Assembly: GCA_002269645.1 (NCBI GenBank)
Contig: NIVC01003844.1
Coordinates: forward strand, 1-64,000
From: Macrostomum lignano
Taxonomy: Eukaryota
Direction of reading: 5' to 3'
DNA length: 64,000 bases
The translations under genes were made by a program, and so were the position numbers. Numbering within the stretch: position 1 is the stretch's first letter; each line of letters begins with the position of its first letter. Of the stretch, positions 3,206 to 33,610 are shown piece by piece. A model generated the notes under the pieces. It was not told where the DNA came from. It made no database searches and saw only the letters and a program-made list of their open reading frames with translations.

Positions 3206-3560
3206 AGGGCCCTGTCAACTCATAAAGTGGAGCCCGAGTAACCTATGCACACAAATGATACAGTATGTCATTCTGCTCACAATGACACTAGGAAGCTAGT
3301 TTTGGCAAAATAGCGACGAAAATTTGACTTGGGATAGGGTAAAACAAGCAAAAGCTGATAATAGTGACTCTACTTTATGAGCTTAAGTTGACATAATAGT
3401 AAATAGTTCCTTAATTATCCCCTTGCTTATTCTTCCAAGTCCAATTTTGTCGCTTTTTGCCAAACCCAGCTTCCTAGTGTCATTGTGAGCTGAATGGCAT
3501 ATCATTTGTGTGCATAGGTTACTCGGGCTCCACTTTATGAGCTTAAGCTGACAGGCCCCT
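3206..3560. mobile_element. MITE with about 130-bp imperfect TIRs and TTAA target duplication (Kolobok/T2-type termini)
   Basis: TTAA (3202-3205) + AGGGCCCTGTC...GACAGGCCCCT + TTAA (3561-3564); long inverted arms; no ORF. Confidence 0.8.
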
Positions 3561-4278
3561 TTAAACCGATGGCGACTGTTGGGAAAAGTTTGCTTTCATT
3601 CAAGTGACGAAAATTTGCAACAAAACACTGGGATTTCCCCTTCAATTTACTAACCAAAATCTTAACTTTTATAAATTTTCGCACCTGTGCGGACTGTATG
3701 TTGCGGATTTTCGACACGATTGAAACGTGTTTAAATATCTGTTTGTTTATGGTTCTTCCTCCGTAGACAGTTACCCCAGTTTAATTATCGTATAAGAACA
3801 AGTATAAATAGAAAAACGTACAGATTTGGGAGCTGACTAAAAAATGTCCAAGGGATTTTGGTCACAGCACAATTGCGTAATCAGACAACATTCAGAGACA
3901 AAAAAGGAATCCCTCGAGTATGAGTGGGCCGAATGTATTCTTAACGATGATATAACTTGGATACAAATCCTATATACTAAAATTGAATCTATGCTAGTAG
4001 TGACAAAAACGAGGGTTTTCAGTTTAAAGTAAGTTAAACAGCTTTGTTTAAACAGTTAGAGTTCCCGCAGCCGTTTAGGACCCGATCGAGAAGCCGGCAG
4101 AGTCCCGATGTCTCACCGGCGCTGTAAATGAGAGTTGAAGTTGTTCAGCGGCATGCAATTGGGAATCGAGAAACAGGGGATACCGTCTACAGAACATTTG
4201 CTGCCTTATTCACATCACTCACTCTCCCGAACTTCTTCGTCAGCCAGTGGGCACACTGTGCAGCTCTTGGGTCGGCTC

Positions 4279-4989
4279 TCATGAATGACTAATTGCACTA
4301 AGCCCCATTGACAAAATTCGTAAGAAAGCCAACCTTGGGGACTTTGAGAATGATGCAAGCACTTCTCTGGCCAAATTCGACATTTTGTGACTGTGAAATC
4401 TTACCGCGAAAAAGCTGAGCAACCCGGCCATAATGAATTTAACTGCACCAATTCCGGCCTGTGACTGCCACGACAACTGCGACTCCCCTGTCACAACTCT
4501 CTTCATGCTCTCAGTAGCATTCCAGCAGTTGCTACAGAGACTGCTGTAGACTTCTCCGCTCGCCTCCAGCAGCTGCATCAGCGTGACGTCAGTGCGTTTG
4601 ATCTTTATTGGTTTGACAATCCGGAAATTAAGAGGCAGCTCCTTGCCTATCTTGACAATGCGGCTGCCCTTTTCGCCACCGATGCGGTGCAGCTCCTCCA
4701 TGTGGTCCGGCGCTACGCCTGTTCGTCAGTGTTTTGTTAAATTTTTAAAAACCAAGATAATTTGGACAGTTTTATCCATTATTTATTTATTTATCACAGT
4801 TGCAACAGTCAAGCAGTTTAGAGGCCACAATATGCAGCACTCACCCTTTTCGATCAGGTACTTTTGACCATCGGCGGTGGTGACCACGCACCCCTCATGA
4901 GGAAATTTGTAGCCGGACGTTTTGTCCGATCGCTTGGTACTGAGTGGTCGCTCGACAACCACGAATTCAACGACTATCTTCTGCAGCTC
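4279..4989 (-). pseudogene. Copy B of the permuted papain-like family; exons about 4989-4845 and 4718-4279; start codon region lost
   Basis: Same intron position and phase as copy A. Reads ELQKIVVEF...FPHEGCVVTTADGQKYLIEKG|VAPDHMEE...GEVYSSLCSNCWNATE followed by hydrophobic IGAVKFIMAGLLSFFAV. The 5' side is fused to copy C exon 2. Confidence 0.6.
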
Positions 4990-7348: not shown

Positions 7349-8360
7349 ATGTCGCACGGCACTGTCAACTCGCTTCTGTCGCTGTGTCTCTGCCTTCCTG
7401 CCTTCGGTCTCGCCCAAGAGTCAACGAGCAAAATAACGGTCTGGGATAGGTGGTTCGACAGTCTGAGCGAGTACTCGACTCTGCTGAGCATCTCCGTTCC
7501 CAGCAATGTCTTATGTCTGATGAAAGCCAGTCTGAGTACCGCGGACGCCGCTGACTTCTCGGAGGAGGACGGACTGTGCCGCCTCTACCGGTGCCGATGG
7601 GGGCCGTCCGGCTGCAGGAAGTGCCGATACGTCTCGCAGGGAGCGCGGCTGTGGGTGAGGCCAGACGGATGAAAATTCAGTAGCTGTGCTGCTGAGGTTT
7701 GGGTAGCTGGGCATTCCTGACCATTGCGGTCATTTCGCTCTCTCATTTCAGCTCAGACGGCCGACACATCTGGACCGAAAGTTCTGTTGGCGCACCTTCC
7801 AGCACCGCGTCGACGGTTCCGTGCGGTTCGATCGCAACTGGGCCGAGTACCAGGCCTCGTTTGGCCAGGACGAGCACCGCAACTTCTGGCTGGGCCTGGA
7901 CACCATCCACGCCGCCACCGAGGATGGACTGCGCCGAGTCCGCTGGGAGCTGAGAACGTGGCAGGACCAGCCGTTCTGGGCCGAGAACGAGCGCTTCCTA
8001 GTCGCCGGCTCCGACAAGCTGTACCGACTGCTGCTCGGACCGCTGGAATCGAGCCTCTCCTCGATGGGGCAGTGCAGCTTCACGGACATGAAGTTTCTCA
8101 ACAATCAAAGCTTCTCCACATTCGACATGGACAACGACAACAGCAGTGTCAACTGTGCGCGAGTGTACGACGGAGGCTGGTGGTTCAACAGTTGCGCCTG
8201 CTTCAACCCGAACGGTCTGTACTACCAGTACCCGGATGCGTACAACAAAAGTGCTACGGACAGCCAGGGGATCTACTACTTCTGGCCGGGAGCGCCCTAT
8301 CCGTTTCGCTATGAGCATTCAATGAAGGAGTTCGAGTGTCTGTTCACGGATTTTATTTAA
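7349..8360 (+). CDS. Secreted fibrinogen-related domain (FReD) protein, about 304 aa: signal peptide, Cys-rich PAN/apple-like region, FBG domain; exons 7349-7654 and 7752-8360
   Basis: Phase-0 intron TGG|GTGAGG...TTTCAG|CTC. Exon 2 reads WRTFQHRVDGSVRFDRNWAEYQASFG...FWLGLD...FSTFDMDND...NCA...GGWWFNSCACFNPNG. The N-terminus MSHGTVNSLLSLCLCLPAFGLAQ is hydrophobic. Confidence 0.9.
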
Positions 8361-9439: not shown

Positions 9440-9850
9440 TCACAGGTCAGGAGCAGCCGGGGTTGAGGCGACAGTCTGCAGCTGCGAAGCCCGGGAAACC
9501 GGAGGAGCTCGGCTCGACATCCGGGATCCGGAGTTGGCCGAGTAGCGGCTGCGGCGGCTCCTGTCCGAGCGGCAGAGCAGCGCGTCCACGAGCTCGTCTC
9601 GGAACTTTTTGCCGCTGAGCACGTACATGAAGAAGTTCATCGTGTGGTTGGAATACACCAGCACGTCGGTTGCTGCAGAGGCCAACTCTTGGCAAGCTGG
9701 AAACGGACTGTAGCTCGGCCAGTACGGAGCCGAGATGTACATTGACATGCTCGGCGTGATCAGCACAACGTACATCAGCGTCACCAGCAGCATCATGCGG
9801 GTCATGCTGCTGTTTGTGTCATCGGCCGACTGCTTTTGCTGCTGCTGCTG
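9440..9850 (-). pseudogene. Rhodopsin-class (peptide-receptor-like) GPCR, end of ICL3 through TM6, TM7 and C-tail, separated from its upstream part by a LINE
   Basis: MTRMMLLVTLMYVVLITPS (TM6); DVLVYSNHTMNFFMYVLSGKKFRDEL (TM7 and helix 8, NFxxY variant). Confidence 0.8.
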
Positions 9851-12800
9851 TTGTTGTTGTTGTTGTTTTGTGGTACGCGCCCAGGCAGAGCTAAGGGCAG
9901 TGTCTGGCCAGCGCTATCAACCCGAGGGGTCGGCGGAAATGCTGCTGATGTCTGTCGTGGGTCCTCCAAGAAGGCGGAGCCTGGTGCCGGCGAGAGCTGG
10001 GCAGTCAAGCCAGTGTTCCAGGTCATCGCAGGGATGGCCGCAGCGGTGACATGCTGGGTCGACGGCCGGGTCGACAATGCTGCGATACGCGTTGAAAAGA
10101 GTGCAGTGACCTGAGCGTAAGCGCGCAAGAAGCACCGCATCGGCACGGTTGGTGATGGAGTCCTCTTCCAATTGACGGTTGAGAAGCCGGTACGCGTGCC
10201 GGGTGCGCTCGTGGCGTATCGGGGGATCGAGGACGGATCTTCTGATGACGTTTTTGGCGCTGTGGATGCTGATCTGACTAGCGGGAGACACGAGCGTGGT
10301 GGCCTCTTTGGCTGCTTGGTCGGCCAGCTCGTTGCCAGGAATATTCTGGTGGCCCGGAACCCACTGCCAGGTGATTTCGGCAGATGCAGTAGGTAGTGCA
10401 GATCTGATTCTGGGGTTGCCGCTGGCCAGAGCGCGGAGCATAGATTGGCTGTCTGAGCAGATGTTGGTAGCCGCGGTGAGAGCAGCTTGGTTGATCCAGC
10501 CGATGGCGAGAGAGGCGGCGCGAAGCTCCTCTTCGAACGAGGATGTGGAGGGCGCGCCGCGCTGTTGAAGAGTCGCCAGGATGATAGGGTGGGCTGGGTC
10601 ACCGGTCGTGACGATGGCTGAGGCGCCGCCATTGGTCGTGCCGCCTGATGCCGAGCCGTCGCAGTAGATGGTGATCAGGCCTGGGAGGTGGCGGATAGTG
10701 TCGATGGCCGTGGCTGTGCGCGCGGGACCGGGTTCCGGCAACGCCATGTCGACACGCACGTCGGTAGAGAAAGGGTCCCAAGGCGGCGGACGAGCAGTGC
10801 AGATCATGGCGCGCGGCGTGACCGAGCTAGCAATGAGTGGCAGCAGGTCGGTGACGTGGTTCCGCCAACTGTTCCTGCGTAGCCTGTGCGCTGTGTTTCC
10901 AGTGGCGGCAATGCGGCACGGGTGAGAATCCGGGAGGCGCTGAGCTCTTTCGAAGGCCGTCAGGCATATAACATTGCTACCAGTGCGGACGGAGCAGATG
11001 CCAGCTTCCAGCCTAAGGGCCTCAACCGGAGTCGTGCGGTGTTGTCCTGTGACAATACGAAGGGCTGCGTTCTGCGCTCTCTCCAGCTGTTGAAACGCGG
11101 ATTCAGAGAGCCAAGGGTGCCAGGCCGGCGCAGCGAAGTTAATGATGCTAAGTTGCATGGCACGGTAAATGCGGAGCAGGAGTTTTTTGGACCATCCCCA
11201 TTCCTTGGAGGCCAGGCAGGCGAGGAGACGGCATCGGGAAGTGGTCCGATTGCACACGTGCTCCAGATGACTGCGGAAACTCAGAGTGCGGTCCAGTGTG
11301 AGGCCCAGCAGCCGAGGCGTTGGATTGTGCCGCAGGTTCCGGCCTTCGATAGAGATAGCCGGGGACCAGGCGGCTTCGCTGGTGTCCGTGGAGAAAAAGG
11401 CGGCCTCGCTTTTGTCTGGGTTTAGGACCATTTTGTGCTCATTGCTCCAGCGGGCCACGTTGTCGAGTGCTCTTTGCACAGTGCGTTGAGCCTCGAGCTT
11501 GTTGCGGTGGCGGCGCGGAGGGCGATGTCGTCGGCATACATGGAGATCTCTGCCGGCGGGTTGACCACGTCATTGACCGTGTCAATGAAAATAAGGAAGA
11601 GAAACGGAGCGATGACCGATCCTTGCGGGAGGCCCTGGCGCATGATAACCGGTGAGCTGCGAGCACCGTGGAGTTGCACGCGGGCAATGCGATGGCGCAA
11701 AAAGGCCGCAGTCCATTTGATAAAGACAAGAGGGACGCGTTTGCGTGCCATAACGGTGATGAGGCGCTCACGCCACACTTTGTCAAAGGCTTTACAAAAA
11801 TCAAGCAGAGCAATGATCGTGCGTTCAGATGGTTTGAGGTTCATCCCGTCGCTGATGTCTTGGGTGACTCTCAGGAGCTGATCCTCGCAGGAGTAGTTGG
11901 CCCGAAACCCCGCCTGGTTCGGGGAGATCAGCCGTGGCGCTCAGCCAGGTGGTGCAATCTAGTGACCAGGATGCGCTCGAGCAGCTTGACAATACAGATG
12001 TGAGGCTGATGGGGCGAAAGGCCGCGATGTCCCGAGCCGACTTTCCAGCCTTGAGGCAGGGAATAATAATCGCGGTGCGCCAGGATTGAGCGACGGCCGC
12101 GTGCTGGAAGGACCAGTTGAAGAGACTAAGCAGCTCTGCGCGGGCGAGCGGGCCAAGGGCCTTAATGAACCGAGCGTGACCTCGTCGGCGCCAGCAGCGC
12201 CGTTAGCACGCTGGTGTTGGATGGCTGAGTCCAGTTCCTGCTCGGTGATGGCGGCGTAACCGTCGTGGATCGAACCTGGGAGCGGAAGGGGAACCGAAGG
12301 ATGGCTTTGGCTTCTCGGATAGTAGCGCGATCCGAATGGGAAATGTGGTACCTGCTGACAGAGGCGTACTGCTTGGCAAAGGCGTTGGCTTTGTCTCTAG
12401 GGTCTGTTAACACTTTGTTGCCGACCTGGAGGCCTCATTAGGGCAGTTGGAGTCCGGAGTGCCGTTAAGGCTGCGGATGAACTTCCACGCCTTGTTCGAG
12501 TTGGGCTCTTCTCAAGATCGGTTATCGTGTCACGCCAAGCAGCCTCTTTCGTTGCCCTGGCAATTTTGAACGTTGGCGCAGGCGCTGAGCCAATCTTCTC
12601 TATTCTCGCCAACGGAGCGCCTGAGGCGGTTACGGAGCTTAATCGCCGCTTTGAGTTCAGGGTGAGCCAGGGACGCGGTCTGTGCGAGGTACGGACTTTG
12701 CCGATGCAAAGGTTTGCCGCTTGCATGACTATATCATTAAAGCGTTTGGCTCTGGCGTCAAAGGTAAGATGCTCTTTGTGAAGGGCTTTAAATTTGTCCT

Positions 12801-14465
12801 CGACGACCGTTTGGAAAGCATTCCAGTCGACCCCTTGTTTGCGCCATATGAGACGGCTTTGGGCCTTAGGCAAGGTCCTAACCTTGAGGTCAAGGCGGAT
12901 CACAATCGGCGTGTGATCACTGCCGAGGTCATCGGAGACTTGCCAGGTGCATTTGCTAGCCAGCTTTGAGGAGGCGAAGGACACATCCGGTGAGCTTTCG
13001 CCACCTGTGGCTTTATTGACTCTGGTGGGCGAGCCGTCGTTAAGGATTTCCAGTTGCGTGTCGATGGACCAGTCCAGGAGCGTGGAGCCTCGTTCGTCCT
13101 GGGGCTGTATAGGGTCCCAGGCCGGAGAGTGGCTGTTGAAGTCTCCTAGGATGATGCCCTGAGACGGAGTGCCCAGGTGATTCCAGTCCGGAAGCTGTCG
13201 ATCCTCGACGCAGGTGCGAACAGGTGGAGCATAGACGTTGGTGATGGTAATCCAGTTAGCGGTAGATATCTGGATGTCGACCGTCTGGATTTCCATGTCC
13301 GCTGTGGCCGTGGGTTGCGGGGACGAGCGGAAGGCCAGCTTGTCTCTGATGAGAAGCAGCAGACCTCCACCGCTGCCGTCGCCGCGGTCTTTGCGCACGG
13401 CGATGTACCCGTTGATCTTTGGCAGCTGCGTGCGGTTGGAGAGCTTCGTTTCTTGGACAGCTGCAATGTCGATATCGCTGTCGGAGAGGCGTTCGGCCAG
13501 CTCGGGCAGTTTGGAGGCGATTCCGTCGGCGTTCCACTGGAAGACGGAGGCTGTCGGCAAATTTAGTGTCGCGGGCGACCTTGTCCTGCAGGGGACGCGC
13601 GACGTAGCTGCCGAAGGGGCGGGAGCTCCTTGGGTGCGCGCTGTGCAAACTGGGCAGTCCCAAGGGCTGCGAGCCGCGGCATCCGCGGCGTTGCGATTAA
13701 GGCCGGTGCAGCACTTGTGGTAAGCGGCGCTGCAGGAGTTGCACTTGACAAACGCGACGCCGCGGCGAATGGCGGTCGAGCATTTAGCACAGTAGCGGCG
13801 CTGGGCGTCGCTTGGATCGTTCAGATCTCTGTCGGTAGTGGGATCAGCTTGTCTGCGGGTAAGAGCAGGGCGGCGGAAGATGGAGTGTGCGCCTGGAAGT
13901 TGGACCGCCTGCTGCCGATGCAGAGGGCAGAGCCAGCTGGGGGCGCCACGATACCGCGAGATGTGGCTGCAGTTGCTGGAGCGGTGGCAGGCCAGAGCGC
14001 AACCTTTGGCAGCGCAAGTGAGCGGAGTAGTGCCAGTGCGGATGGGCCCTGAGCAGCTGTGACAGCGCGTTGGCTGAGACATGCGGGGCTCGGGTGCCGG
14101 GAGGTCACGCAGGTGCGCAGCGGATGCCGAGTCCAATTCAAGGGGGCGGTGCACAGAGCAGCGCCACGGAGATCGGACAATCTCGGCGCGGTGCATACCG
14201 CTGCATTTCTTCTGACAGTGACAGCGCTCGAACATTCTGGGACCTCACATGGCAGGCTGTGCATGCCCGTGCGGATTGGGCCGTTGCATGAGTTGCAGGC
14301 TGGGCCGGGATTAGTTTCGATGTCCCGGCGAGCGTAGTGAGGGCGAGCGCAAAGAGGACGAGGCGGGACAGATAGACAGCAGCAAAACAACCGGTCTCCC
14401 TGCCAGCCGTGCCGAAGGCACGCGAGGGCAGATGGGTTGAAGACCACGACTTAGGAGCTTTGGTG
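9851..14465 (-). mobile_element. Ingi-like (I group) LINE, near full length: 2A-like peptide, three PHD-like fingers, APE endonuclease, RT, RNase H, C-terminal zinc finger, (CAA)n tail; several frameshifts
   Basis: 15-bp TSD TTGCTGCTGCTGCTG at 9836-9850 and 14466-14480. Motifs: DIETNPGP; QWNADG/QETKL/GDFN/SDH (APE); QGS and YADD (RT); YCDGS/EL/SDS/WVPGH/GNELAD (RNase H); CHRC...HWLDC. Confidence 0.9.
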
Positions 14466-14534
14466 TTGCTGCTGCTGCTGCTGGTGGCCCTCCTGCATGG
14501 CCTGTCGACGCTTCCCCGAGAGCAGCAGCTGCCG
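14466..14534 (-). pseudogene. Upstream ICL3 portion of the same GPCR, running into the gap
   Basis: RQLLLSGKRRQAMQEGHQQQQQQ joins in frame to KQSADDTNSSMTRMML when the LINE and one TSD copy are removed. Confidence 0.7.
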
Positions 14535-14979
14535 NNNNNNNNNNNNNNNNNNNNNNNNNNNNNNNNNNNNNNNNNNNNNNNNNNNNNNNNNNNNNNNNNN
14601 NNNNNNNNNNNNNNNNNNNNNNNNNNNNNNNNNNNNNNNNNNNNNNNNNNNNNNNNNNNNNNNNNNNNNNNNNNNNNNNNNNNNNNNNNNNNNNNNNNNN
14701 NNNNNNNNNNNNNNNNNNNNNNNNNNNNNNNNNNNNNNNNNNNNNNNNNNNNNNNNNNNNNNNNNNNNNNNNNNNNNNNNNNNNNNNNNNNNNNNNNNNN
14801 NNNNNNNNNNNNNNNNNNNNNNNNNNNNNNNNNNNNNNNNNNNNNNNNNNNNNNNNNNNNNNNNNNNNNNNNNNNNNNNNNNNNNNNNNNNNNNNNNNNN
14901 NNNNNNNNNNNNNNNNNNNNNNNNNNNNNNNNNNNNNNNNNNNNNNNNNNNNNNNNNNNNNNNNNNNNNNNNNNNNNNN
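14535..14979. other. Assembly gap (445 N)
   Basis: Run of n. Confidence 1.
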
Positions 14980-15050
14980 AGGATCGCAGATAGGTTTAGT
15001 AGGCCTCTCATCTGTACCCGAAAGATTCGAGATTAAATCACCCCAGAATT
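14980..15050 (-). mobile_element. Continuation of the R2-like ORF beyond the RTE insertion
   Basis: Reads KFWGDLISNLSGTDERPTKPICDP, in frame with NNISVEEYT on the other side of the RTE element. Confidence 0.65.
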
Positions 15051-15063
15051 TAGTATATTCTTC

Positions 15064-18000
15064 TTCTTCTTCTTCTTCTTCCACCTTTTTTTCGCCTCCC
15101 GGCGTAGGTGGCACCCTGTGTCTCGGACGTTTCCTCTTCTTCTGTTACTCGCCGCATGCACTCTCTCGTGCCGTGCCATGTTGGTTGCTGACAGCCATCT
15201 CTTACAGTATCGACATTCTGCTCTCTTCCTTTTGTGGATCCTTGCTATCATTCTCGCCGCTTCGTCGTTCGTCTTCGGTCCTTCCATTGCATGGGGCTCC
15301 TCCGCGCACTTCTTCCTGTGTCTTGCGTAGTTAGTCTTACTGATCCACGTTTTACAGTCGTTACACTCTCTTCTTGTGCCTTCCGTCCTGCCTCCCGTGC
15401 ACCATTTCTCGTGATTCTTTCTTGTCGCTTCCGTTCTGAACTCGCTGTTGCATCTCTCGCATCTCATTCTTATGCCCGTATCGGTCTTGTGCATTCTTTT
15501 CTGGTGGATGGCTAAGCCTCCTCTCGATCTGCATACTTTTCCGCAGTTCTTTTCCCAACACCTGAAACCTGTCAGTTCGTTTTCATCCATTTGAGTGCTG
15601 TTGAGCTGGTTTTGTTCCTCTCGTCCTTCGTCGTCTCTTTCTGCACCTTTGCATCTCAGCCGTTCGATCTTTTCCCACTCGACGTCTCTTTTCCTGATGA
15701 TCTCTTTCCACTTGATCTTGTCGTTCGCGTATTGTCCTACCTTGAGTGGGTCGAGTTTTGTTTTCCGGACCAGCTTTTTCCAGTAGGTGATAATTGTAGT
15801 TCTTCTCTTCTTCGGTCTTCTTATTTTCTCTATCCTTTTATTCCATCCCATCACGCAGATCTTTGTGAGGCTGGTATCCGGTAGTCTTAGGACGTGACCC
15901 ATTCGTCTCCAGTGTGCGATCTCAATTTTTCTCTGGATACTTTTAATTCCAAGAGATCGTCTTACGTCCCACATGTTCACTTGCTTTTCTTCCATTTCAC
16001 GTAGAGGTTCCTTGGTTTTACTGCTCCAGATAAAGCGGTAGCATTTGTCTATTGTTCTTTGCAGTTGATTTACTTCGCCTTGCTTGAACGGTCTCGCCCC
16101 TGCGTTGAACGTCATCGTGCTTTCCACACATGCCTCTATCACTCTCGCCTGGGTTCGTTTACTCAATCTTGTTCTCCTGAGTCTTTTCTTGACTTTAGCC
16201 TATGCGTTTGTTGCTCTTTGCAGTCTCTGGTGGATGTCTTCTTTGCTGCCAAGCCATACACCCAACATCCGGATCTTATTACTTTCCTCTGTTCCCAAAA
16301 TTGCTGTCTCTTCTTTCTCATCGTTCGTTCTCTCTTCCAACCATCCATGACTTCCTTCACCGTCTTTGTACCTTCCTCGATCTCCTTCTTCTCGCCTATC
16401 ACTGTGGTGTCGTCTGCGAAAAGTGACCAGGTGATCCGTGTGGTGATTGATTCTTCCGTGAACTGGTAGTTTCTCTGTGGGGGCAGGTCATTGCGTGGTA
16501 GGTATGTCCATTCGATACCTATTTCCAGACCCTCGCTTGCTGCTTTGATTTTTCTTTCGGTCTCGGCTGCTCGCATGACCGCCTGGTGGTAGATATTGAA
16601 AAGCACTGGCGAGGTCGCACATCCTTCTCGCAGTCCTCTCTGGGGAAAGAATGTCTGGCTGTTCTCGTCCTCGGTGTGTATCTTGTAGGCGGTGTTTTCG
16701 TGCAGGTCTTTAAGTTTATCAATCATCTTCTCTGGCATCCCGTGGTGTGCCAACAGTTTCCATAATGCTGGCTTATTCACTCTTGGGTAGGCTTTTTCAG
16801 GTTTTTCCTCGTTGTTTTCGTCGTTTTCTTCACTTTCCTCGTTCTCCGTGTTTGCTCGTGCTTCCCTCATCAGTGTTGCGTCTTCTTGGAGTCTCAGGAT
16901 AATCTGGGTGGCGTCCATTGTCGATCTGTTACGCCTGAAGCCTGCTTGATTTTCGTCTAGGCACTCGGTTTCCTCCGCCGACTTGTTAATTCGGGTTGCG
17001 ATTATTCTCGCCAGTATTCTGCTTGTGATTGGAAGTAGGCATACTCCTCGGTAATTGTTCAGATTCTTTTTGTCACCCTTCTTATGCAGAGGGATTATTA
17101 GACCAAGTTTTTGGCTCTCTCTCCACTTCTTTGCTGGTTCTTCCCAGAGTCTCGTAATCTCGGTGAAACATTCTTCTTTTACGGTTTCGTTTGCCGCCCT
17201 GGTGTAGATTTGTCTAACTTCATCCTCTCCGGGTGCTCCATTCTTCATCTTGTTCAACTCTCTCTCGAATTCTGTCTTAGTGATGGGTTCGATCAGGGCT
17301 GTGTTTGCTATCCTTCGCACTTCTTCGGTCACTTGAGGCTTTTCAAGCGCGTCAATCCTGGTCATCATGGTCGTTGGGTCGTTCTCGAAGCGATCTTTCT
17401 GCACTAATTCGAGGTGTTCTTTGAAATCGCTTGCACTGAACAGATCTTTCCCCCTGCTTTGGTTTTGGTTTCCCATCTCCGTTATACCCATTTCTTTGAG
17501 GTTTTCGTACATCCCTGCGATATTTCCTTTCTCGCAATTTTCTTTGCACTTTTGAGCAAGTCTGTCCCACCAGTCCTCCTCCCACTGCGTAAGTTTCTCG
17601 TTCTTCTTCCTTTTCTCACGGAGTTCTTGCTTCTTTGTTTCCAGGTTTCTTCTGTCTTCTTCGCTTCGCGTTTCTAGCCATCTGCGGTTTGCTTCGTTTC
17701 TCTCCTTCAGTGCGTCTTTGATGCCTAAGTTAAGTACCCTTAGTTCACCTTCCTTCCCGGCAAGCCATGGGTTTGTTTGTCTTTTCTTGATTCCGCATAC
17801 GGCCTCTGCTGTCTTCACTAGGTTTGCCTCCATTGTTTCCCATTGGTTCTCTCTTGTTTTCTGGTACGTTTCTTTTGCGAATCTTTCTCGTATTTCAACT
17901 TCTCTGAGTTTTTCCCATTCGATCCTCTTCCTCTTTTGCTTCTTTATCGCTGTCGCCTTGTTCTTCTTGATGATCTTCTTGATTTGTTTCGTCAAGTTCG

Positions 18001-19188
18001 GGTGTATCCAAAGGACCTTCGGTAGGTGATCTGATAGCTTCGGGCTGTGGTCCGTGTACACTTTTCTCACGGTCTTGTGCCTCTGGTCTTTTCTTACCAG
18101 GAAACCGTCCAGTTCGTACCATCTCTTCGTTTTTGGGTGTTTCCAAGTGCCCCCTTCTTTTGCTTGAAAAAGGAGCTTGTCCATACCAGGTTCCACTCTT
18201 CCATCCATAGCATTAAATCTATTCCTTGTTCGTTAGCCGTTTGCATGTTACATTTTCCTATGCAGCTGAACGGGGTACCAGATTTCGGGTTCATTCTTGT
18301 GTTGTTGCTTCCTACTGATGCATTGAAGTCGCCCCCGATGAAAATGGCTTTCTTTTGTCTTACCGTTGTCATGAGTCTTTCGAGTTCATTCCGTATTTCT
18401 GAGGTTGTCTTGTCGTAGCCTTCGACGCCTTTGACTGGTTGGTATACCGAGATTAGTATGCAGTCACCTAATTCAATTGCCAGGCTTCTTTCTTGTGGAT
18501 GCATCTTCCTTCCTTCTTTTAACCACAATAGCCATGCTGGTTCTGATAGTAGGATTCCTACTCTTCCGGAGTGAATTAAGTGGCTTGTTCCTTTGTTAGT
18601 CCTATACTCCCTGATTCCCACTTTGGTTTCTTGGGTTTCCGTGATTAAGGTAATTTGCCATTTATAGGCTGTCTTTACGATTTCGCCAAACCTTGCCGAT
18701 CCGATGTTGGCTCGCTGTACATTCCAGGTTGCAATCTTTATCCTTGCTTCTTTCCATTCCGATTCTGCTTCTTCGGTTTTCTGTTTTATTTGTTTTTCTT
18801 TTCTTTTCTTTCTTCTTAGTGTTCTCCTCTTATTTCTTGCTCTTCTTTGATCTGCGTTCCTAGGTCCTGGATTATTCTCAATGGTGCACAGGTCCTTCTC
18901 AATCCTTGTCTTAACCGATCTCTCCGATTCTTTTCCTAGTTCTCCTTCCTCTTCCTCGTCCGAGTTGGCACTAGGGTGCCTCACTTTTTTGTTGTTTATA
19001 GAGGTGTGGACCGTGGTTAGTGGGCCACCACTCTGTTGAAGAGGGTTTCGTCCACGGACCTCAGGTGTTACTCTGAGTCCGCGGGCTCTTCCCCCCCCCT
19101 TTTTGGCTTCTTCTTTGCCAGCCGATTTCTCGGGCAGTCCGCTTGGCACTTGTGCGTCTGCACGAAAGTGGGAAGCCGTTCGCCAAGC
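15064..19188 (-). mobile_element. RTE-like LINE: APE, RT, four C-terminal C2H2/C2HC-like fingers, (GAA)n tail; frameshifted
   Basis: 13-bp TSD TAGTATATTCTTC at 15051-15063 and 19189-19201. Motifs: ATWNV, TETQE, GDFNA, SDH, QAGFR, GLREGCATSPVLFNIY, LFADD; fingers CWEKNC...HQKRMH, CERC...HEKWC, CNDC...HRKKC, CRYC...HERVH. Confidence 0.88.
19105..19188 (-). ncRNA. Candidate HDV-like ribozyme at the exact 5' end of the RTE-like LINE (atypical L3)
   Basis: P1 GCTTGGC (19188-19182) pairs with GCCAAGC (19147-19141), followed by GG; P2 GGCTTC/GAAGCC; P4 hairpin with a GAAA loop. Confidence 0.45.
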
Positions 19189-19201
19189 TAGTATATTCTT
19201 C

Positions 19202-20934
19202 AACGCTAATGTTGTTTCGTCTTCCTCGCCCAATTTTTCCAAGCCCCTGTGAAGACCGATTCTGCTGCTCTCTTTTTATTTTTTCGTAAATCCTATGCAT
19301 TTCTGCAAAGGCTCTACGCCTTTTTTCCTTCTTTTTTGGCTTTTTTGATTTTTCGTTTTTTCATAATAGGTTTCTTGGTTCCAGGACCCGTAGGTAGTAA
19401 TTTCTCGATTAGGTTACAGGTAGCTTCATTTCCCCTCTTCTAAGAGCTTGCAGATAACATTGCAATACTCACCAAGTTCCACGCACTTATTTTTTCTAAG
19501 CCAGGCAATAATATGTTCATTATTGTCGCTACTAACACCTTTGGAATAACAGCTGTTCTTAGGAATAGTAGTCTGCTGATCTATGCCATTGTTTTCAAAA
19601 CTTTCTTCTGAGTCTGAGCCCCAAATTTTGTTTTTAACTTCTTCTGGAATGTCATGCTTAGCGAAATCGGTATTTCCGTTCTTACTAGATGAACTAACAG
19701 CTTAAATCTGGCCACCTTCATGACCTACCAAGTCAAGCTCCGGCAGGTGGCCGGCGGACACCGGACCCAAATCCTGACCAGACGCCAAGCTGCCAGTTAC
19801 ATCGTCGTTTTTGTATTGACTTTTTTTGGAATTTTCGGAATTTTTTGTTAAATTCGACTTATTTGAGTAGCCATCGACCTCACCTGACTCAAAGATAGTG
19901 GGCATGGCACCCGGACCCTTAGGATTCGTATCCCGGCCACTGTCTATGGTCTCACCCCCTGCCTCTGTTGCTAGGTCTTCTTTTTTGTTGGTTTTCTGAG
20001 TTGTATTCGCTTTTTTTGTTTTCTTGGTTGGCTTCTGTCTTACTAGTTACTTTGTACTTCTCGCTAGGTCTTTTTCAGTCTTTTCTAGTCTTTTTTCAAA
20101 TTGCTTCCTTCTAACCTTCCTCAGCTCATCGACACTACCTCTAACTCCTGTTACGACAGCTATCTGAACTTCTTCTAGAATCTCATCATTCTCGCTAACT
20201 TTATTACGGGCTTCGTTTCTGAGTTTTTCCACAAGTAATTTGTAAGTCTTGGTTCTTTTAGCGCTCTTAATGCTGTCTAGAGTTCTCTCAGGTAATATTT
20301 TCGCTCTCATAACCACGTCGTTTACTGGTACGAAGTTAATATCAAATTTGGCTTCAAAACTAGCTAGTATGTATAATTCCTCATCAGACCATCTTTTTTT
20401 GGTGCCCGGTAGGGCCGAGCATTTTATAGAATGGTAGTAGTCAGGATGAGTCTGTCTTTGATGATTGCTAAGCCCCGCTCTAGTACTAAATTTGCCGTCA
20501 CACTCACTGCAGGCATACCCACCACTGGCCTGACCTATCCCCCTGGAGTGACACCTATTTTGCCCATCAGCAGAGGCCGACAGGTCTGTATCGTTATTTT
20601 TATTCGTAGCAATAGGATGTCACAGAAGACCCGGGCTGCTAACCCAGGCCCCCCGAATTAAACAGTGGAATTAAGCCGCAGCACCGAGGTACGTTTGAAG
20701 AATGAGGGAAGAAAAAAGGCGGAGAGGAAGAAGCTGAAAAGAGAGGATGAAGGGAGTGATGTGGACTAAGAAAGGTTGAGGAAGCCAGATTGAAGATGAG
20801 AGCAGGAGATGAAGCGGTGAGACAGAACAGAGGAAAGACACGTACCCCGGCACTCCGTTGCCCGACTCTCGCCTCGTGGAGGCATCAAGCACTGTCTGAC
20901 AGGGATTAGCACTACGGCGTCACCAAGACGAGCC
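19202..20934 (-). mobile_element. 5' part of an R2-like (RLE-type) non-LTR element: 5' ribozyme, C2H2 zinc finger, Myb domain, pre-RT segment; frameshifted
   Basis: YACSECDGKFSTRAGLSNHQRQTHPDYY (20511-20446); KKRWSDEELYILASFE...LPERTLDSIKSAKRTKTYK; RRRAFAEMHRIYEK(fs)NKKRAAESVFTGAW. Confidence 0.8.
20660..20934 (-). ncRNA. HDV-like (nested double-pseudoknot) ribozyme candidate in the 5' UTR of the R2-like element
   Basis: P1 GGCTCGT/GAGAGTC (6 of 7 pairs); P2 AGACAGTG/CACTGTTT; P3 GCC/GGC with L3 TCCACGA; GG for P1.1; P4 GTGCCGGGGTACG/CGTACCTCGGTGC around a pyrimidine-rich insert; J4/2 GGCTTAA. Confidence 0.6.
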
Positions 20935-21764
20935 AGATCTGCTATCGTGCTTTTACCCTGCGATCATCAACATTCGAATCGAAACCCGGACCCGCCTAAG
21001 CGGAGACCAACTAGATGAAAGTATGTTAAAGTTCGAGCCGCACCCGACCATAGCGCGTACAGGCCCGATCCTGATCCGTGTTTCAATCCGAACGAAGTTC
21101 CCCCTACTCCAAGGGCGTACCTACAGAGCAAGGATCCCACCGGTGAGAATCGAACCACCAGACCGAACCGGGTGCGGGGGGCCACCCAATCCGAAGGCAG
21201 AACAATCCTCACAATCATCCGCACTAGAAGCAAAGCTTTAGCCCGGAATCCTGATCAGTTATGTTTACCCTCTACCAGGTTTCCCCGGTAGTGGAGCCAT
21301 TTTTCGAACTGGAGCTCCCCGGCATCCAGCCGCCATTACTGAACAGTCCTCCAGGCTTCGGCGAAGCTTCTGCCAAGCTTAAGTCTCAGGCCTCTTCTTC
21401 CGTGGGAAGTCTTCTTAGCTCTTAGTAGCGTAGGTAGTGCTGCCACCAGTTCCTTCAGGTCTCGGCCTTCGATGAGGTGAGCTTCCCGTCGGAACGAAAT
21501 ACACAAGTCAACAAACTCAACACGACGTGCAGACTTGCAGCTCAACGTAAAGGCGTCTCGTTAGCAGTACCTGCCGGGCTTGGTTGGTACAGGGAGGGCT
21601 GTGTTAGTCTCTCTTAGGCTAGGGTTGGCTTTAGTAGGGTCGCAGTCAGACCAATAGGAGAGAGCTCAGTGTATGCAAACACTTAAAGAACAGTCGTTCA
21701 GTACAGACACTGGGAAACGCTGAAAACTAGGAACTCCTTGACGGAAACAAGGGGGAGAGGGGTC

Positions 21765-21966
21765 CTATTTATAGCGCGGGATTCACCTCTAGCCCATTGC
21801 ACAAGATCTCGTGACTCGTTCTATTTTGAGAACTAACGTCACTCAGGGCCTCCGGGCAGGGTCCCAATCCGCGCAAGACCTCGTGACTCGTTCTATTTTT
21901 AGACCTGACGTCACTTGGGGTCTTCGGGCAGAGTACGCGTGGCTGTGACTCAGTTGCTATTTTTAG
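21765..21966. promoter_or_regulatory. Candidate enhancer/promoter: repeated units with AP-1-like, MEF2-like and CRE motifs plus a minus-strand TATA
   Basis: CTATTTATAG 21765 (TATAAATA on minus), CTATTTTGAG 21821, CTATTTTTAG 21893 and 21957, TGACGTCA 21906, TGACTCA 21946, GTGACTCG twice. Confidence 0.3.
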
Positions 21967-22409: not shown

Positions 22410-23500
22410 TTAAACACTTTTCAGGCGGGCCACTGCAGGCACCCTGAACCCCCTTCTATCCCATTTTCTAGTGTCTAGGTCGAAACTGTGCACTCCAGTG
22501 GCATCAGCTTTATTATACCAGCGCTTAGCTAGGCTCCAAATGCGCTCTTTGATCATAGGCATCTTAGTGATGTAGTGCAAATAGCTAATTATTGTGTACG
22601 CTGGGGCATCAAGGGACACCCTGAGTGCCTTGTTCTGCATCAGCTGAAGCTTATTGAGCTGTACATCCGTGAGATATATCAGCACTGGAGCACCATAGAC
22701 CATACAACTCTCTATGTACAATCTATAGATTAGTCTGAGCCCTAGCTGAGAGATTCCAGTCTTTGGCTAAGCTTTGAAGCGCGAACAATTTATTTTGAGC
22801 AGCATGCACGATTTTGGCCAGGTGTGGCTTAAAGGTGAGCTGTTTTTCGAGGATAATACCTAAGAAGGAGACGGAGTCATGGTAAGGGATGGACTGATTT
22901 CCAAGTAACAGGGGGGGGGCTTGTCAGGCCCAGTACGTTGGTTGCCCAGAGGCTTAAAGAACAAAATCGCTGTGCTCTTATTGGGGTTGATAATAATCCC
23001 AACTTCGTCAAGCCAGACCTGAGCTTTCTTGAAGTAGGCGTTAAGAAGTTTAGCTGAGATTGAGGATGTCCTGGCGCTCGCCCAAACCGCCAGATCATCC
23101 GCATATTGACTAACATGTACCTTTCTATCAGCAGGCAGTGGAATATTGTTGACATATACCAGGAAGAGCAGCGGCGAGAAAACTCCCCCCCCCTGTGGAA
23201 CTCCAGCTGCCGGGGAGAAGCTCTCGCTAAGAGCCCCTCCAACCTGGACCTGCAGATCTCTATCGTCAAGATAGCTGGAAACTGACCTCGTTAGGCAATG
23301 GGGTAGACCACTTTCAAGGAGATCTAACCGTAGCGAGTCATGCCAGACTCCATCGAAGGCACCTTCAACGTCAAAGAAGACCCCAAGGGTGTACTGACTG
23401 AGTTGCAGCATCTTGAGGACGTCATCAGTAATCCTAACTATGTTATCGAAGGTGCAATCATCTTGTCTATATGCACATTGATCTGGACTAATGATATTGC
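22410..23500 (-). mobile_element. Jockey-like LINE RT fragment (RT motifs through C-terminus), degenerate
   Basis: NIISPDQCAYR...VFFDVEGAFDGVWH...GVPQGG...SPLLF...QYADD...LQLMQNKALR. Confidence 0.85.
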
Positions 23501-23534
23501 GGTTAGGGTTAGGGTTAGGTTAATAGAGGCAAAC

Positions 23535-23860
23535 TAGCAATCAGCGCCCCCCGTTGGGGAGCCAAAAAAATGCAGTACAAGATTTTTTAATAAACTACAT
23601 GTAAGCGTCTCTTTGCATTATACCTTGTAAGCCTTGACATGTCAGAAAATCCCCCCACAAGCCTTAGCATATCAACCCCCTTGACATCTTAGCAATGCCC
23701 CATAAGCCTTGCAATCTTAAAAAATCTGTCAACCTTCTAACCCTAGCCCTAACCCTAAACCTAACCCTAACCCTAACCCTAAACCTAACCCTAAACCTAA
23801 CCCTAATCCTAACCCCACCCTAATCCCTAATCCTAACCTTAATCCCTAATCCTAATGCTA
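23535..23860 (+). repeat. Non-coding element ending in a degenerate (CCCTAA)n telomere-like tract; inverted relative at about 24150-24410
   Basis: CTAGCAATCAGCGCCCCCCGTTGGGGAGCC... followed by a CCCTAA/CCTAAA array at about 23738-23857. Confidence 0.75.
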
Positions 23861-24125
23861 ACTCTCACCCAATCTCCTTCCGCCTCTGGTCCCCTGGTAT
23901 CTTAATCTGTCTGGGTTAGGGATTAGGGTTAGTGTAAGGTAAGGTGAGGTTGGGTACTTGCTAATTGAAGCGACTGGGGCCCAGGTCCGCGGGAGATCCA
24001 GGGCACCACCAGGGAGGCTGGGGAAGGAGGAGGAGGAGGGGGAGGAGGCACTGGCCCCCGCCACAGCGTCCTCGGGTACTGGGGTCTCAACCCAGACCGG
24101 AACAGGGCGACGGGATCCATTGCAC

Positions 24126-24410
24126 CCTAACCCTAACCATTGCACAAGATCTAGGTTAGGGTTAGGGTTAGGGTTAGGGTTAGGCTAGAATTAGAAAGTA
24201 GACAGATTTTTTAAGATTTCAAGGCTTTTAGGGGCATCGCTGAGATGTCAAGGGGGGAAGTTGATATGTTAAGGCTTGTGGGGGAAATTGCTGACATGTC
24301 AAGGCTTACAAGGGACTGCTGAGGTAAAATGCAAAGAGACGCTACATGTAGTTTATTAAAACAACTTGTACTGCATTTTTTGGCTCCCCAACGGGGGGCG
24401 CTGATTGCTA
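24126..24410 (-). repeat. (TTAGGG)n tract plus the inverted copy of the 23535-23740 element
   Basis: GGTTAGGGTTAGGG at 24146-24186, then a diverged reverse complement of the 23535-23740 segment. Confidence 0.75.
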
Positions 24411-24469: not shown

Positions 24470-24960
24470 TTTGCCTCTATTAACCTAACCCTAACCCTAA
24501 CCGCAATATCATTAGTCCAGATCAATGTGCATATAGACAAGATGATTGCACCTTCGATAACATAGTTAGGATTACTGATGACGTCCTCAAGATGCTGCAA
24601 CTCAGTCAGTACACCCTTGGGGTCTTCTTTGACGTTGAAGGTGCCTTCGATGGAGTCTGGCATGACTCGCTACGGTTAGATCTCCTTGAAAGTGGTCTAC
24701 CCCATTGCCTAACGAGGTCAGTTTCCAGCTATCTTGACGATAGAGATCTGCAGGTCCAGGTTGGAGGGGCTCTTAGCGAGAGCTTCTCCCCGGCAGCTGG
24801 AGTTCCACAGGGGGGGGGGAGTTTTCTCGCCGCTGCTCTTCCTGGTATATGTCAACAATATTCCACTGCCTGCTGATAGAAAGGTACATGTTAGTCAATA
24901 TGCGGATGATCTGGCGGTTTGGGCGAGCTCCAGAACATCCTCAATCTCAGCTAAACTTCT
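24470..24960 (+). mobile_element. Inverted near-identical duplicate of the Jockey-like RT fragment (partner of 23044-23533)
   Basis: Same translation apart from a G-run length difference and one substitution; shares the same (CCCTAA)3 junction. Confidence 0.85.
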
Positions 24961-25189
24961 TGACAGGGGAAACCAAGACTGACGGAACGAGGTCAGCCCA
25001 CAGCAGAGAAGCTGGGGGCTGAGAAACGAAGGGCAAAGCGGGCAGAAGAAGGAAGGGAGCAGCAACAGACAGACAAAAGGGGACCGGACGGGACGCTGCC
25101 CAGCGGCAGACAGCAACCCAGGGCGCGGGCCAGGCAAGGGCGACTGCTGACAGAGTGGGACGCCTAACATCAACTAGCGGATCACTACA
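24961..25189. repeat. LTR-like repeat, copy 2; truncates the RT duplicate
   Basis: TGACAGGGG...CTACA, homologous to 22112-22342. Confidence 0.55.
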
Positions 25190-29554: not shown

Positions 29555-30518
29555 ATGGAACATCTGACGAAATTTAGTTTCTTAAAAGATAATGTCATAA
29601 TCGAAATCGCCGCCGAGTCTGAGAACGAAGCCCTGCGGTACCTCGAAAGCTGCGAATTTAGCACACTAGGAGAGCGCATAGCTATACAGCCTCCGCGGGA
29701 TATGAAGACCGACTCCTTGGAGCACGAATTTTTGAAGGTACTTTGGACAGCGGAAGTACATGTGGAGACAACCAGTCTGCTGTAGCCGTTGACTCTGGAA
29801 GTTCTACATCTAAGGATCTTAGTCTTAAAGCATCTGTTGAAGAGAAACGTAAACTTGAAACGAAGTGCTTCCTGGCATGTGTATCTAAGCGTAAGAGAGA
29901 ATTCGAAAGCAAGATCATTAAAAAAAAGTTATTTGGAAGCATCTTGAAGACGACATGCAAAAGCAAGGATACCAACTACCTGCGGAACAGTGCGAAAACA
30001 AGTATAAAGTTTTGAAAAAGAAATATTCTAATTTCATTTTACAGCAGGCTAAGTCTGGAGAAGGCAAAAAGGAAATTGAATTTCAAAAGGAGTTAGAAGA
30101 ACTTTTTGGTAAGCATGCTGATGTTGCCCCGAAATTTTTGCTGACTGCACAGATGCCTGTGTCACTTGGTGATCAACATTCTATTGGCACACCTAATGCC
30201 AATTATTTGAGGTCAGATGCAACATCAACATTGACTTCTAGCCCTGTACAACAGCAACAAAGTGGCAATGAAAAAAGAGCAACTGACTTTCCAACAGCAG
30301 GCAAGCAAAATGTTAAGCAACAAGGAAAGAAAAAAGAAGAGAAAGAAGCAAGCAATGAAAGAGTTGAAACATTATGTCGAGCAATTTTAGAGAAACTAAA
30401 TGAGAATCAGCAAGAACATAAGGAAACAAGAAGCCTAATGGAGCGTCAGCATGCAGAGCGAATGGAGAGACAAGACAGGTTTTTGGAGCTTTTTGCAAAG
30501 AGTATTGACAAGAAGTAA
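29555..30518 (+). CDS. Harbinger Myb/SANT-like (trihelix) DNA-binding protein; two apparent frameshifts near 29740 and 29930
   Basis: ETKCFLACVSKRKREFESKIIKKK(fs)VIWKHLEDDMQKQGYQLPAEQCENKYKVLKKKY...KSGEGKKEIEFQKELEELFG. Confidence 0.75.
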
Positions 30519-32024: not shown

Positions 32025-33610
32025 TCACAAAGACTCTGCAATTGCCCATCTCTTCTGCTGTGTTGTCTGGTTGTTGTTCTGTGGAGCCAGCTGGTCATCC
32101 TGATAGTCATCAATGAGGTCATCAAGGTCTTCTTCAAAGGAGGCCTCATTCTTCAAAATGCAGATGTTATGCAATGTACATGCAGCAACTATGGTGTAAC
32201 AAATGGATGGAACATCCCGTTGATAGATATAGCGTAGACGCCGGAATCTGGCCTTTAACTGGCCAAAAGCCCGTTCCACAACTTGTCTGGCAACTGATAA
32301 GTGCTTGTTGTACTGCTTTTGTACATTACTGAGGTTGCCATTGTCCACAAAAGGTGTTAGTAGCCCATTTAATAATGGATATGCACCATCTCCAAGTAAA
32401 TGAAGTCCATACATGTTCTCACCAGTTTGCACTTTTGCAGCAAGCGGACTATATTGAAATACACGAGCATCATGCATCCGACCAGAGCAACCAACAAAAA
32501 CATCATAAAATAGAAGATTACGTGAAGCCACTGCTTGCAATGTAATTGCCTGGCGATACTTTCTAGTTGTAAAATCAGAAGATGCTGTAGATATTTCAAT
32601 ATGGCTTCCATCAATTGCACCAAGAACATTAGGAAATCCACTGTGGTAGAGAGTTCCTTCAGCATTTGTATGTGCTTCTAACTCTGTTGGCCATTTTATA
32701 AACTGTGATGAGAGTGTAGGAACAATCTTTCTTGGCAATGAATGCACAATTTCATTTACTTTACCAGCACTAACATCATAAAGGACTTCCAACTCTGACT
32801 GATTACACTGGTGACCAATGTAGTCCAAGAAGATCAGCAGCTGCTTGTCGCCTAAAAAGAAGAAAAGGAAACTAAGTCAATAATATAATCATTGTGGTAA
32901 TAAAAAATGACTTATTAACCTTTAGAATGCTTTCTAAAAGGGACAACTTATGTTTTTTTCTTAAACACAGGATTCCAAAATCAAATACAAAGTGCCAAAA
33001 TAAAAAATCAAAAAGCAGTATTGCCACCCAGAAAAGTTGAAAAAATATTTTAGACCCCTAAAGTTGCACTTAGAAAAAGTTAGAACTATTTCAATTAGTA
33101 GCATAAAGTATATAGCAGTAGAATGATGTACTTAGAAAATTCTTTTTTCTATATTATGGCATTAGCCATTTACTTATATTTTTGGACTGATGAGTGATTT
33201 TCTACAGAACACAGAAACAATCAAAAGTTGCAACTTGCAATAAGTAGAGCATTAATAAGAGCCTTATTACCTGGTATTCCTTTTGAAGACGTTGGTTCCT
33301 CATGTTGGTTCAGCAGCTCATATTTCATCAACTCGCCCAGCACAAATTCGAATGCACTTCGCGTGAGTCGGTATCGGCTTCTAAACTCGTCAATAGTAAA
33401 TAATGGCACCGTATTTACGACAAAACCAGGTACTTTAACCCTATGGCGCTTCTCCTCGGTCTTGTTATTTAAAGAAGCAATCACAGTTGTAAGGGCTGCT
33501 GTTGCTGCCAGGACGTTATCCCTATTAGCTTGGTCTACAAGAATGGAAGTTTCACTACTGTCTTCAGTAAAAAACAATTGCTGAACTATAAAAGCAGTTG
33601 CAGAGTCCAT
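32025..33610 (-). CDS. PIF/Harbinger (HARBI1-like) DDE transposase, 388 aa; exons 33610-33271 and 32851-32025
   Basis: FRSRYRLTRSAF; a phase-1 intron gives IPG|DKQLLIFLDYI; GAIDGSHI, LLGDGAYPL, VVERAFGQLKARFRRL. Confidence 0.9.

Follow-up and report, generated by a model that had tools for sequence, protein, structure and literature searches.

A stretch of 64,000 nucleotides of Macrostomum lignano DNA (contig NIVC01003844.1, positions 1 to 64,000; hereafter "the window") holds, from position 20934 to position 14980 on the minus strand, what is very probably the 5′-terminal third of a non-LTR retrotransposon (one without long terminal repeats) of the R2 superfamily, which is dead, lies outside ribosomal DNA (rDNA) and was later split by a long interspersed nuclear element (LINE). 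Read along the minus strand, this R2-like element comprises a ribozyme core, a C2H2 zinc finger, a Myb domain, a linker and the segment that precedes the reverse transcriptase (RT) in R2 proteins, here called the pre-RT segment. Its assembled extent amounts to ~1.75 kb plus a further 71 bp on the far side of the nested LINE, and no further R2 piece was found elsewhere in the 64-kb window. The copy is homologous to R2 in its parts and in their order, it is decayed and interrupted by another element, and its surroundings are free of rRNA. It is a dead, nested and truncated R2-type fragment of an ordinary kind and not a new kind of system. An initial annotation of this DNA had proposed an R2-homologous element outside rDNA, and this is borne out by the collinearity of ribozyme, zinc finger, Myb and pre-RT segment, by R2Bm as the closest relative with a solved structure, and by a 5′ flank that is not 28S rDNA.

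R2, the textbook example of a site-specific retrotransposon, is in development for targeted gene insertion. Judging from established R2 biology, the intact ancestor of the window copy would have been transcribed within a longer transcript, from which a 5′ ribozyme resembling that of hepatitis delta virus (HDV) would have cut the RNA free. One open reading frame (ORF) would have encoded a protein with zinc finger and Myb, RT, CCHC motif and restriction-like endonuclease (RLE), of which the finger and Myb would bind the target DNA and the RLE would nick it, the RNA then being copied in place by target-primed reverse transcription. Lineages that leave the 28S site are of some interest for how such specificity is lost or changed, and examples from planarians, flukes, cockroaches and sponges have already been described.

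Protein-coding parts of the R2-like element

The open frame of the element starts at 20619 (minus strand), after a CT-rich leader of ~240 nt that follows the ribozyme core. It encodes a single C2H2 zinc finger (CSECDGKFSTRAGLSNHQRQTH; 20446–20511, minus strand; Pfam zf-C2H2, E=8.8e-4) that aligns with the finger of R2Bm, followed by an R2-type Myb domain (KKRWSDEE...RTLDSIKSAKRTKTYKLLV; 20230–20400, minus strand). Finger and Myb together (ZF-Myb) align with residues 103–207 of R2Bm (8gh6; phmmer, E=6.4e-11), the best match among solved structures, and the window N-terminus matches an R2 profile with 99.6% probability (hhalign, E=1.5e-23), a score that, like the second hhalign score given below, is not independent of the choice of the profile members, which were picked through the window query. 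This selection does not inflate the R2 identity of the members themselves. Because no second zinc finger was seen in any frame upstream of the finger at 20446–20511, the architecture appears to combine one finger with a Myb, the type found in R2Bm (lineage D).

Downstream of the Myb lies a long linker rich in K, E and S (19429–20229, minus strand; read from the translations) with in-frame stop codons at 20047–20049, 19702–19704 and 19426–19428, the last of which closes the linker frame. The first part of the pre-RT segment, or N-terminal RT extension, follows at 19189–19427 (minus strand) and reads RRRAFAEMHRIYEK / NKKRAAESVFTGAW / NNISVEEYTKFWGDLISNLSGTDERP across two reading frames, with frame changes near 19427, 19321, 19280 and 19216. 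After frameshift correction it matches, with 95.4% probability (hhalign, E=1.8e-8), columns 274–338 of the R2 profile, which lie just upstream of the RT, a reading that requires two compensating frameshifts; phmmer gave a second, weak collinear stretch to residues 265–340 of R2Bm. The segment continues on the far side of the nested LINE as KFWGDLISNLSGTDERPTKPICDP (14980–15050, minus strand; 71 bp), as indicated by the restored frame and the profile match, and ends at an assembly gap. The single C2H2 finger, the Myb domain and the R2-type pre-RT segment of the initial annotation were thus all recovered by profile-based searches, the last of them given the two compensating frameshifts.

An exhaustive HMMER search with the ZF-Myb stretch returned 532 matches among 1.84 billion representative proteins. 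Besides poly-zinc-finger proteins, many of these were single stretches of 31–41% identity at the N-termini of proteins of 1000–1200 aa, and the relatives that were read carry the R2 signature CRAGC..ET..H..Q.C.RTHG.RI.RHD...KPD (CCHC/RLE). The profile of 23 such proteins (A2) aligns with R2Bm end to end at 1048 bits, above three-finger R2 structures. In a word-indexed search of proteins, the corrected translation of 503 aa retrieved one distant R2 (P0001), and the 190-aa ZF-Myb stretch retrieved nothing. The contig of P0001 (L001) offers only 198 nt upstream of the ORF, in which the ribozyme core was not seen, and at its 3′ end the R2 CCHC motif is present in a shifted frame. A protein-pattern scan over metagenome contigs found no relative.

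The window copy shares with R2Bm and other one-finger (lineage or clade D) R2s the order of C2H2 finger, Myb and pre-RT segment, as well as an HDV-like ribozyme at the 5′ end, probably a decayed one in the window copy. It differs from them in that it does not lie at the 28S site, in the low-complexity linker of ~300 aa between Myb and pre-RT segment, in the RT and RLE, which are not in the assembled copy, and in a ZF-Myb identity of ~30–40%.

The ribozyme and the 5′ end

A 26-nt core at 20858–20883 (minus strand), GCCTCCACGAGGC-GAGAGTC-GGGCAA, fits the P3/L3/P3′/P1-3′/J1-4 pattern of HDV ribozymes; it is unique in the window and zero occurrences are expected from shuffled sequence. Pattern match and alignment with the metagenome element described below give P3 as GCC/GGC, L3 as UCCACGA, the 3′ strand of P1 as GAGAGUC and J1/4 as GGGCAA, and all of these core elements, including the CC of L3 for P1.1, are intact. 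No Rfam HDV match was found at the gathering score in the whole window, nor at E<=10 in 20300–21800.

Other parts are more degenerate. P4, J4/2 and the 3′ part of P2, with a candidate catalytic C near 20825, may lie at 20815–20857 (minus strand), as read by hand against the metagenome element. Compared in this way, P1 of the window copy contains a G-A mismatch, P2 has ~5/7 pairs and an internal loop, J4/2 is 3–4 nt shorter, and substitutions and indels occur across 20815–20857. What the initial annotation had called a ribozyme-like 5′ untranslated region (UTR) is therefore, as far as sequence comparison can tell, probably an HDV-like ribozyme in decayed form, its core being unique in the window and common to the metagenome element.

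The candidate 5′ strand of P1 is GGCUCGU at 20928–20934 (minus strand), with 6/7 pairs to GAGAGUC, and would mark where the ribozyme putatively cleaves and the element begins. A second candidate, GAUUCUC, lies 217 nt further upstream at 21151–21145 and pairs 7/7 with GAGAGUC. In view of these two candidates the element begins at either 20934 or 21151; position 20934, which had been taken as its start, holds as a candidate and not as a uniquely defined end. The 5′ flank also has a tRNA-like look, and a tRNA there was discarded when ARAGORN found none.

Cleavage at -13 in the 28S gene has been shown or predicted for the R2s of Nasonia vitripennis and flour beetle B, which are rDNA-specific (PMC3774820). 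As in the ribozymes of these R2s, the 3′ strand of P1 in the window copy complements 28S positions -13 to -7 (GACUCUC); unlike in theirs, the 5′ strand candidates GGCUCGU and GAUUCUC are not 28S sequence and no 28S sequence follows them.

The nested LINE and the assembly gap

The R2-like element is interrupted at 15064–19188 by a LINE of 4,125 bp on the minus strand with an apurinic/apyrimidinic-type endonuclease (APE) and an RT (Pfam Exo_endo_phos_2, RVT_1 and zf-C2H2, placed on its ORFs), a (GAA)n tail and two frame breaks. It is flanked by two copies of TAGTATATTCTTC, at 15051–15063 and 19189–19201, which repeat matching identified as a target-site duplication. Excision of 15051–19188, that is, the LINE with one copy of the repeat, yields ...NNISVEEYTKFWGDLISNLSGTDERP... 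in one frame, with NNISVEEY joined to TKFWGDLISNLS. The proposal that the R2 frame is restored across a 13-bp duplication was therefore correct as to the 13-mer at both ends and the single frame after excision; because the TTCTTC of the repeat merges with the (GAA)n tail, the true duplication measures 7–13 bp. The nested LINE, a clean insertion, arrived later and is younger than the R2-like element.

Two features of the nested LINE were seen in passing. Downstream of its RT there is a C-terminal extension of ~370 aa with four C2H2/CCHC-like finger motifs (15033–16166, minus strand), and a 2A-like CTIENNPGP stands near its N-terminus (18862–18885, minus strand). To our knowledge, neither a four-finger C-terminal region of 370 aa nor an N-terminal 2A-like motif is among the typical features of canonical RTE elements. 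The initial annotation had called this LINE RTE-like, a label that is putative; of the traits of the RTE clade it has the APE, the RT and the simple-repeat tail.

The R2-like element is truncated by an assembly gap of 445 N at 14535–14979, the only run of N in the window. The other side of the gap is abutted by the 5′ end of an unrelated GC-rich LINE with zinc fingers, APE, RT and RNase H (9800–14534, minus strand; ORFs with Pfam Exo_endo_phos, RVT_1 and RNase_H). This LINE, too, has a 2A-like motif near its N-terminus, RRDIETNPGP at 14301–14324 (minus strand). No R2-type RT or RLE was found anywhere in the window by tblastn with six R2 proteins, the RT matches being unrelated LINEs at 19–26% identity. 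By comparison with the metagenome element, the part missing after the pre-RT segment consists of ~2.3 kb of ORF and more than 0.58 kb of 3′ UTR, in total at least 2.9 kb, and therefore cannot fit into 445 N. Target-primed reverse transcription begins at the 3′ end, so that it cannot produce a 3′-truncated copy, and the truncation must then stem from a wrong gap size, a mis-join or a later deletion. The initial annotation had placed the RT and RLE in or beyond the gap: beyond it lies a different LINE, and within 445 N they cannot be accommodated. Its suspicion that the gap is undersized agrees with the at least 2.9 kb that are missing; a mis-join or a truncation after insertion may likewise be the cause.

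Three stop codons and at least four changes of frame interrupt the copy, and its ribozyme has a mismatch in P1 and decay in both P2 and J4/2. With this damage the copy is dead, and its RT, RLE and 3′ end are missing from the assembled sequence.

Absence of rDNA from the flanks

No Rfam family, rRNA included, reached its gathering score in the 64-kb window, the canonical R2 target site was not found in it from either side with up to three mismatches, and local alignment of the 5′ flank with the 28S target region was no better than that of shuffled sequence. The R2 5′ junction lies within uninterrupted contig sequence. A 28S origin of the first 19 nt of the element was considered and discarded, since five gap positions are required to align GGCTCGTCTTGGTGACGCC with GACTCTCTTAAGGTAGCC and the score falls short of that of chance-level alignments. 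The statement of the initial annotation that no 28S sequence flanks the 5′ end thus stands on all three counts (Rfam, target site, alignment), and we infer that the copy reached its present position through insertion outside the 28S site and not through rearrangement. A 2026 survey defines R2 by homology together with insertion at the 28S site. On its 5′ side the window copy is not inserted at this conserved site, as R2 in the strict sense would be, and for this reason it is best called R2-homologous.

Several points weigh against this assignment as a whole. The RT and RLE, which define the clade in phylogenies, are absent, so that the assignment is carried by the ribozyme and by the N-terminal third of the element. 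Two positions, 20934 and 21151, compete as the 5′ boundary. The missing 3′ part has to be put down to a supposed gap error, mis-join or subsequent deletion. Finally, a second copy of the window R2 family was not retrieved from the protein and contig collections, which leaves the family with neither a consensus nor an insertion-site profile.

An intact R2-type element from a metagenome

When metagenome contigs were scanned with the ribozyme core, a single one matched, Ga0157575_124104 (4625 bp; L002), and the same scan of viral contigs gave no match. L002 carries, on its minus strand, an R2-type element with an intact ORF of 1104 aa (587–3901) that encodes finger, Myb, RT, CCHC motif and RLE and aligns with residues 401–1100 of R2Bm (E=3.5e-101). 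Its ribozyme (4096–4177) lies ~200 nt upstream of the ORF and aligns with a canonical P2 (GGUGACC/GGUCACC), a hairpin at P4 and the catalytic C within GGCUAAA; its Rfam match to RF00094 (31 bits, E=0.11) is below the gathering score of 50. The nearest strong 5′ strand for P1 is GGCUCUU, with 7/7 pairs to GAGAGUC. In the minimum-free-energy fold, GGCUCUU (4319–4337, minus strand) pairs with a nearby AGGAGUC; this predicted pairing could be an alternative that competes with P1, which leaves the P1 assignment in L002 less than certain. No rRNA was found in the 5′ flank of L002, which is possibly a living relative of R2 outside rDNA.

L002 and the window copy share a 42-nt ribozyme block with four differences (score 57, against 19+/-2 for shuffles), the 3′ strand GAGAGUC of P1 and a 5′ strand of the form GGCUC.U, the spacing between ribozyme and ORF, and a 5′ flank without rRNA. 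They differ in the intact ORF of L002, with its RT, CCHC motif and RLE, in its canonical P2 and GGCUAAA, and in J1/2, which measures ~167 nt in the GC-rich L002 and ~37 nt in the window copy. Their ZF-Myb stretches are only ~29% identical, and when the two elements were compared for a shared target in the flanks, or for homology in J1/2 and in the 5′ UTR, the scores stayed at chance level.

Two further observations concern L002 itself. The motif GAGGAGUC recurs in its J1/2, and its 5′ flank contains two related stretches of ~90 nt, ~120 nt apart, which were recognised by eye; Tandem Repeats Finder (TRF) reported no array.

Origin of the window copy

How an R2-like element came to lie outside rDNA can be explained in several ways. 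The explanation that fares best, to which we give an even chance, is that the copy stems from an R2 lineage without 28S specificity or with another target, of the kind described as R2NS. Such a lineage would spread at many sites and would rely on read-through transcription and on its own ribozyme for 5′ processing. The 5′ junction free of 28S sequence agrees with this, as does the age of the copy, with its many lesions and a nested LINE; with the turnover of rDNA, copies of such age are not expected, or are rare, in rDNA arrays. The ZF-Myb stretch is at most 41% identical to its listed relatives in 1.8 billion representative proteins and therefore points to a distinct lineage, and in L002 an R2-type element is intact, has a ribozyme with the same P1 and lacks rRNA in its 5′ flank. 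The evidence from L002 is tempered by a ZF-Myb identity of only ~29%, so that it says little on the lineage of the window copy, and the fact that the two flanks share nothing counts against a common new target and not for non-specificity. There is also just a single copy, which lacks its 3′ junction, and the 3′ strand of its P1 complements 28S positions -13 to -7 perfectly.

Precedents for such a lineage exist in R2NS-1_SMed and R2NS-1_CSi (PMC5035012), in BLAG of Blattella germanica (PMC7650587) and in R2-homologous elements of sponges (PMC13188248). The R2NS families are, by their description, like the window copy in having an R2-type protein outside rDNA (PMC5035012); they rest on many copies more than 98% identical to the consensus and with unrelated flanks, whereas the window holds one decayed fragment. 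R2NS-1_PMi of the bat star, which was left undecided, likewise lies on a scaffold without rRNA genes (PMC5035012). BLAG (PMC7650587) and the Myb-containing elements of sponges (PMC13188248) are described as R2-related and dispersed outside 28S, and the sponge elements stand near the R2 root, some with multiple co-folded fingers, in contrast to the single finger of the window copy. The suggestion in the initial annotation of a retargeted or non-specific lineage consequently holds for the location outside rDNA and is not carried, at the level of a lineage, by one decayed copy without a 3′ junction. One dead fragment cannot tell how the window family chooses its targets.

Somewhat less probable, and still a serious contender, is that the copy is a stray product of a 28S-specific R2 family, through off-target insertion or rearrangement out of rDNA, and has since decayed. 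Its GAGAGUC is exactly complementary to 28S GACUCUC at -13 to -7, and RNA cleaved at -13 would bring its own 5′ strand of P1 to an ectopic site. On the ribozyme sequence, this complementarity would suit an ancestor or source specific to rDNA no less well than a lineage without 28S specificity. Resident copies in rDNA would go unseen in short-read assemblies, from which rDNA is usually missing or in which it is collapsed. There is a precedent for this course of events as well: an oyster family once called non-specific, R2NS-1_CGi, was renamed by Kojima et al. in 2016 after a 28S-flanked copy had been found (PMC5035012). A 28S leader of 13 nt, however, predicts the start GACTCTCTTAAGG, from which the actual start GGCTCGTCTTGG departs by one mismatch and two indels. 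This change exceeds the overall decay of the copy, roughly estimated from the lesion count at a few percent, the resemblance to 28S is not significant, and a 28S fragment lies nowhere in the 64 kb.

A more specific proposal, which we consider doubtful, is that of an R2 lineage whose ribozyme was freed from rDNA by a diverged 28S leader within the element that supplies the 5′ strand of P1, with the window copy as a fossil and L002 as a living example. In such a lineage 28S GACUCUC would have become GGCUCUU or GGCUCGU, and both changes leading to GGCUCUU would be transitions that keep the pairing with GAGAGUC. If true, full-length copies would process themselves anywhere and could spread outside rDNA. 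The P1 strand complementary to 28S -13 to -7, found in two elements without a 28S flank, one of them intact, is a small lead.

Least probable of all, and indeed improbable, is that the R2-like N-terminus fronts a chimeric or different element (e.g., ZF-Myb with a non-R2 RT) or that the junction at 20934 or the gap join is an assembly artefact, as might be thought from the unassembled RT and RLE, the different LINE on the other side of the gap and a gap too small for at least 2.9 kb, since the pre-RT segment that follows the Myb is R2-type and collinear, the nested LINE inserted later and cleanly, with a target-site duplication, the R2 5′ junction lies inside uninterrupted contig, the 445-N gap being the only N run in the window, and the ribozyme-to-ORF arrangement is that of L002.

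Surroundings of the element

The neighbourhood is rich in transposons and contains further fragments of RT as well as a hAT transposase and an ORF of Harbinger type. The only clear piece of a host gene seen near the element is an exon for a fibrinogen C-terminal domain at 7821–8360 (plus strand; PF00147, E=3.8e-32); an exon of a G protein-coupled receptor at ORF 9440–9805 was considered and dropped, having no Pfam support. A 64-nt unit occurs twice at 21799–21934 (plus strand), upstream of the R2-like element; the starts of the two copies are 72 nt apart, the copies are 84% identical, and each of them holds a palindromic GTGAC...GTCAC box.

An inverted duplication with an RT fragment (23040–23500 and 24503–24964, 99% identical) encloses arrays of the telomere-like repeats (TTAGGG)n/(CCCTAA)n, which run in both orientations, at 23501–23522, 23737–23870 and 24154–24187; the whole may have arisen by palindromic rearrangement, may represent a telomere-associated LINE or may be an artefact of the assembly. 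An ORF for a Harbinger/PIF-type DDE nuclease (32025–32828, minus strand) lies near a Myb/SANT-like ORF (29955–30518, plus strand), both recognised by eye from the translations; a nuclease and a Myb/SANT-like ORF form the usual two-gene layout of Harbinger transposons. Further along, an intact ORF of 1187 aa (38383–41946, minus strand) encodes a transposase of the hAT/DUF4371 type with ~24 tandem N-terminal repeats of 16 aa (AASAAALDVGGAPDNP), whose best named relatives are mostly from echinoderms (Holothuria 44%, Diadema 42%, Lytechinus 41%), a weak hint about the host. The telomere-like arrays and the exon for a fibrinogen domain would suit a marine invertebrate. Long tandem arrays at 45500–49104 and 52690–53590 are open in several frames on both strands, e.g., as GTHFSAA repeats, and are probably satellite-like repeats and not genes.

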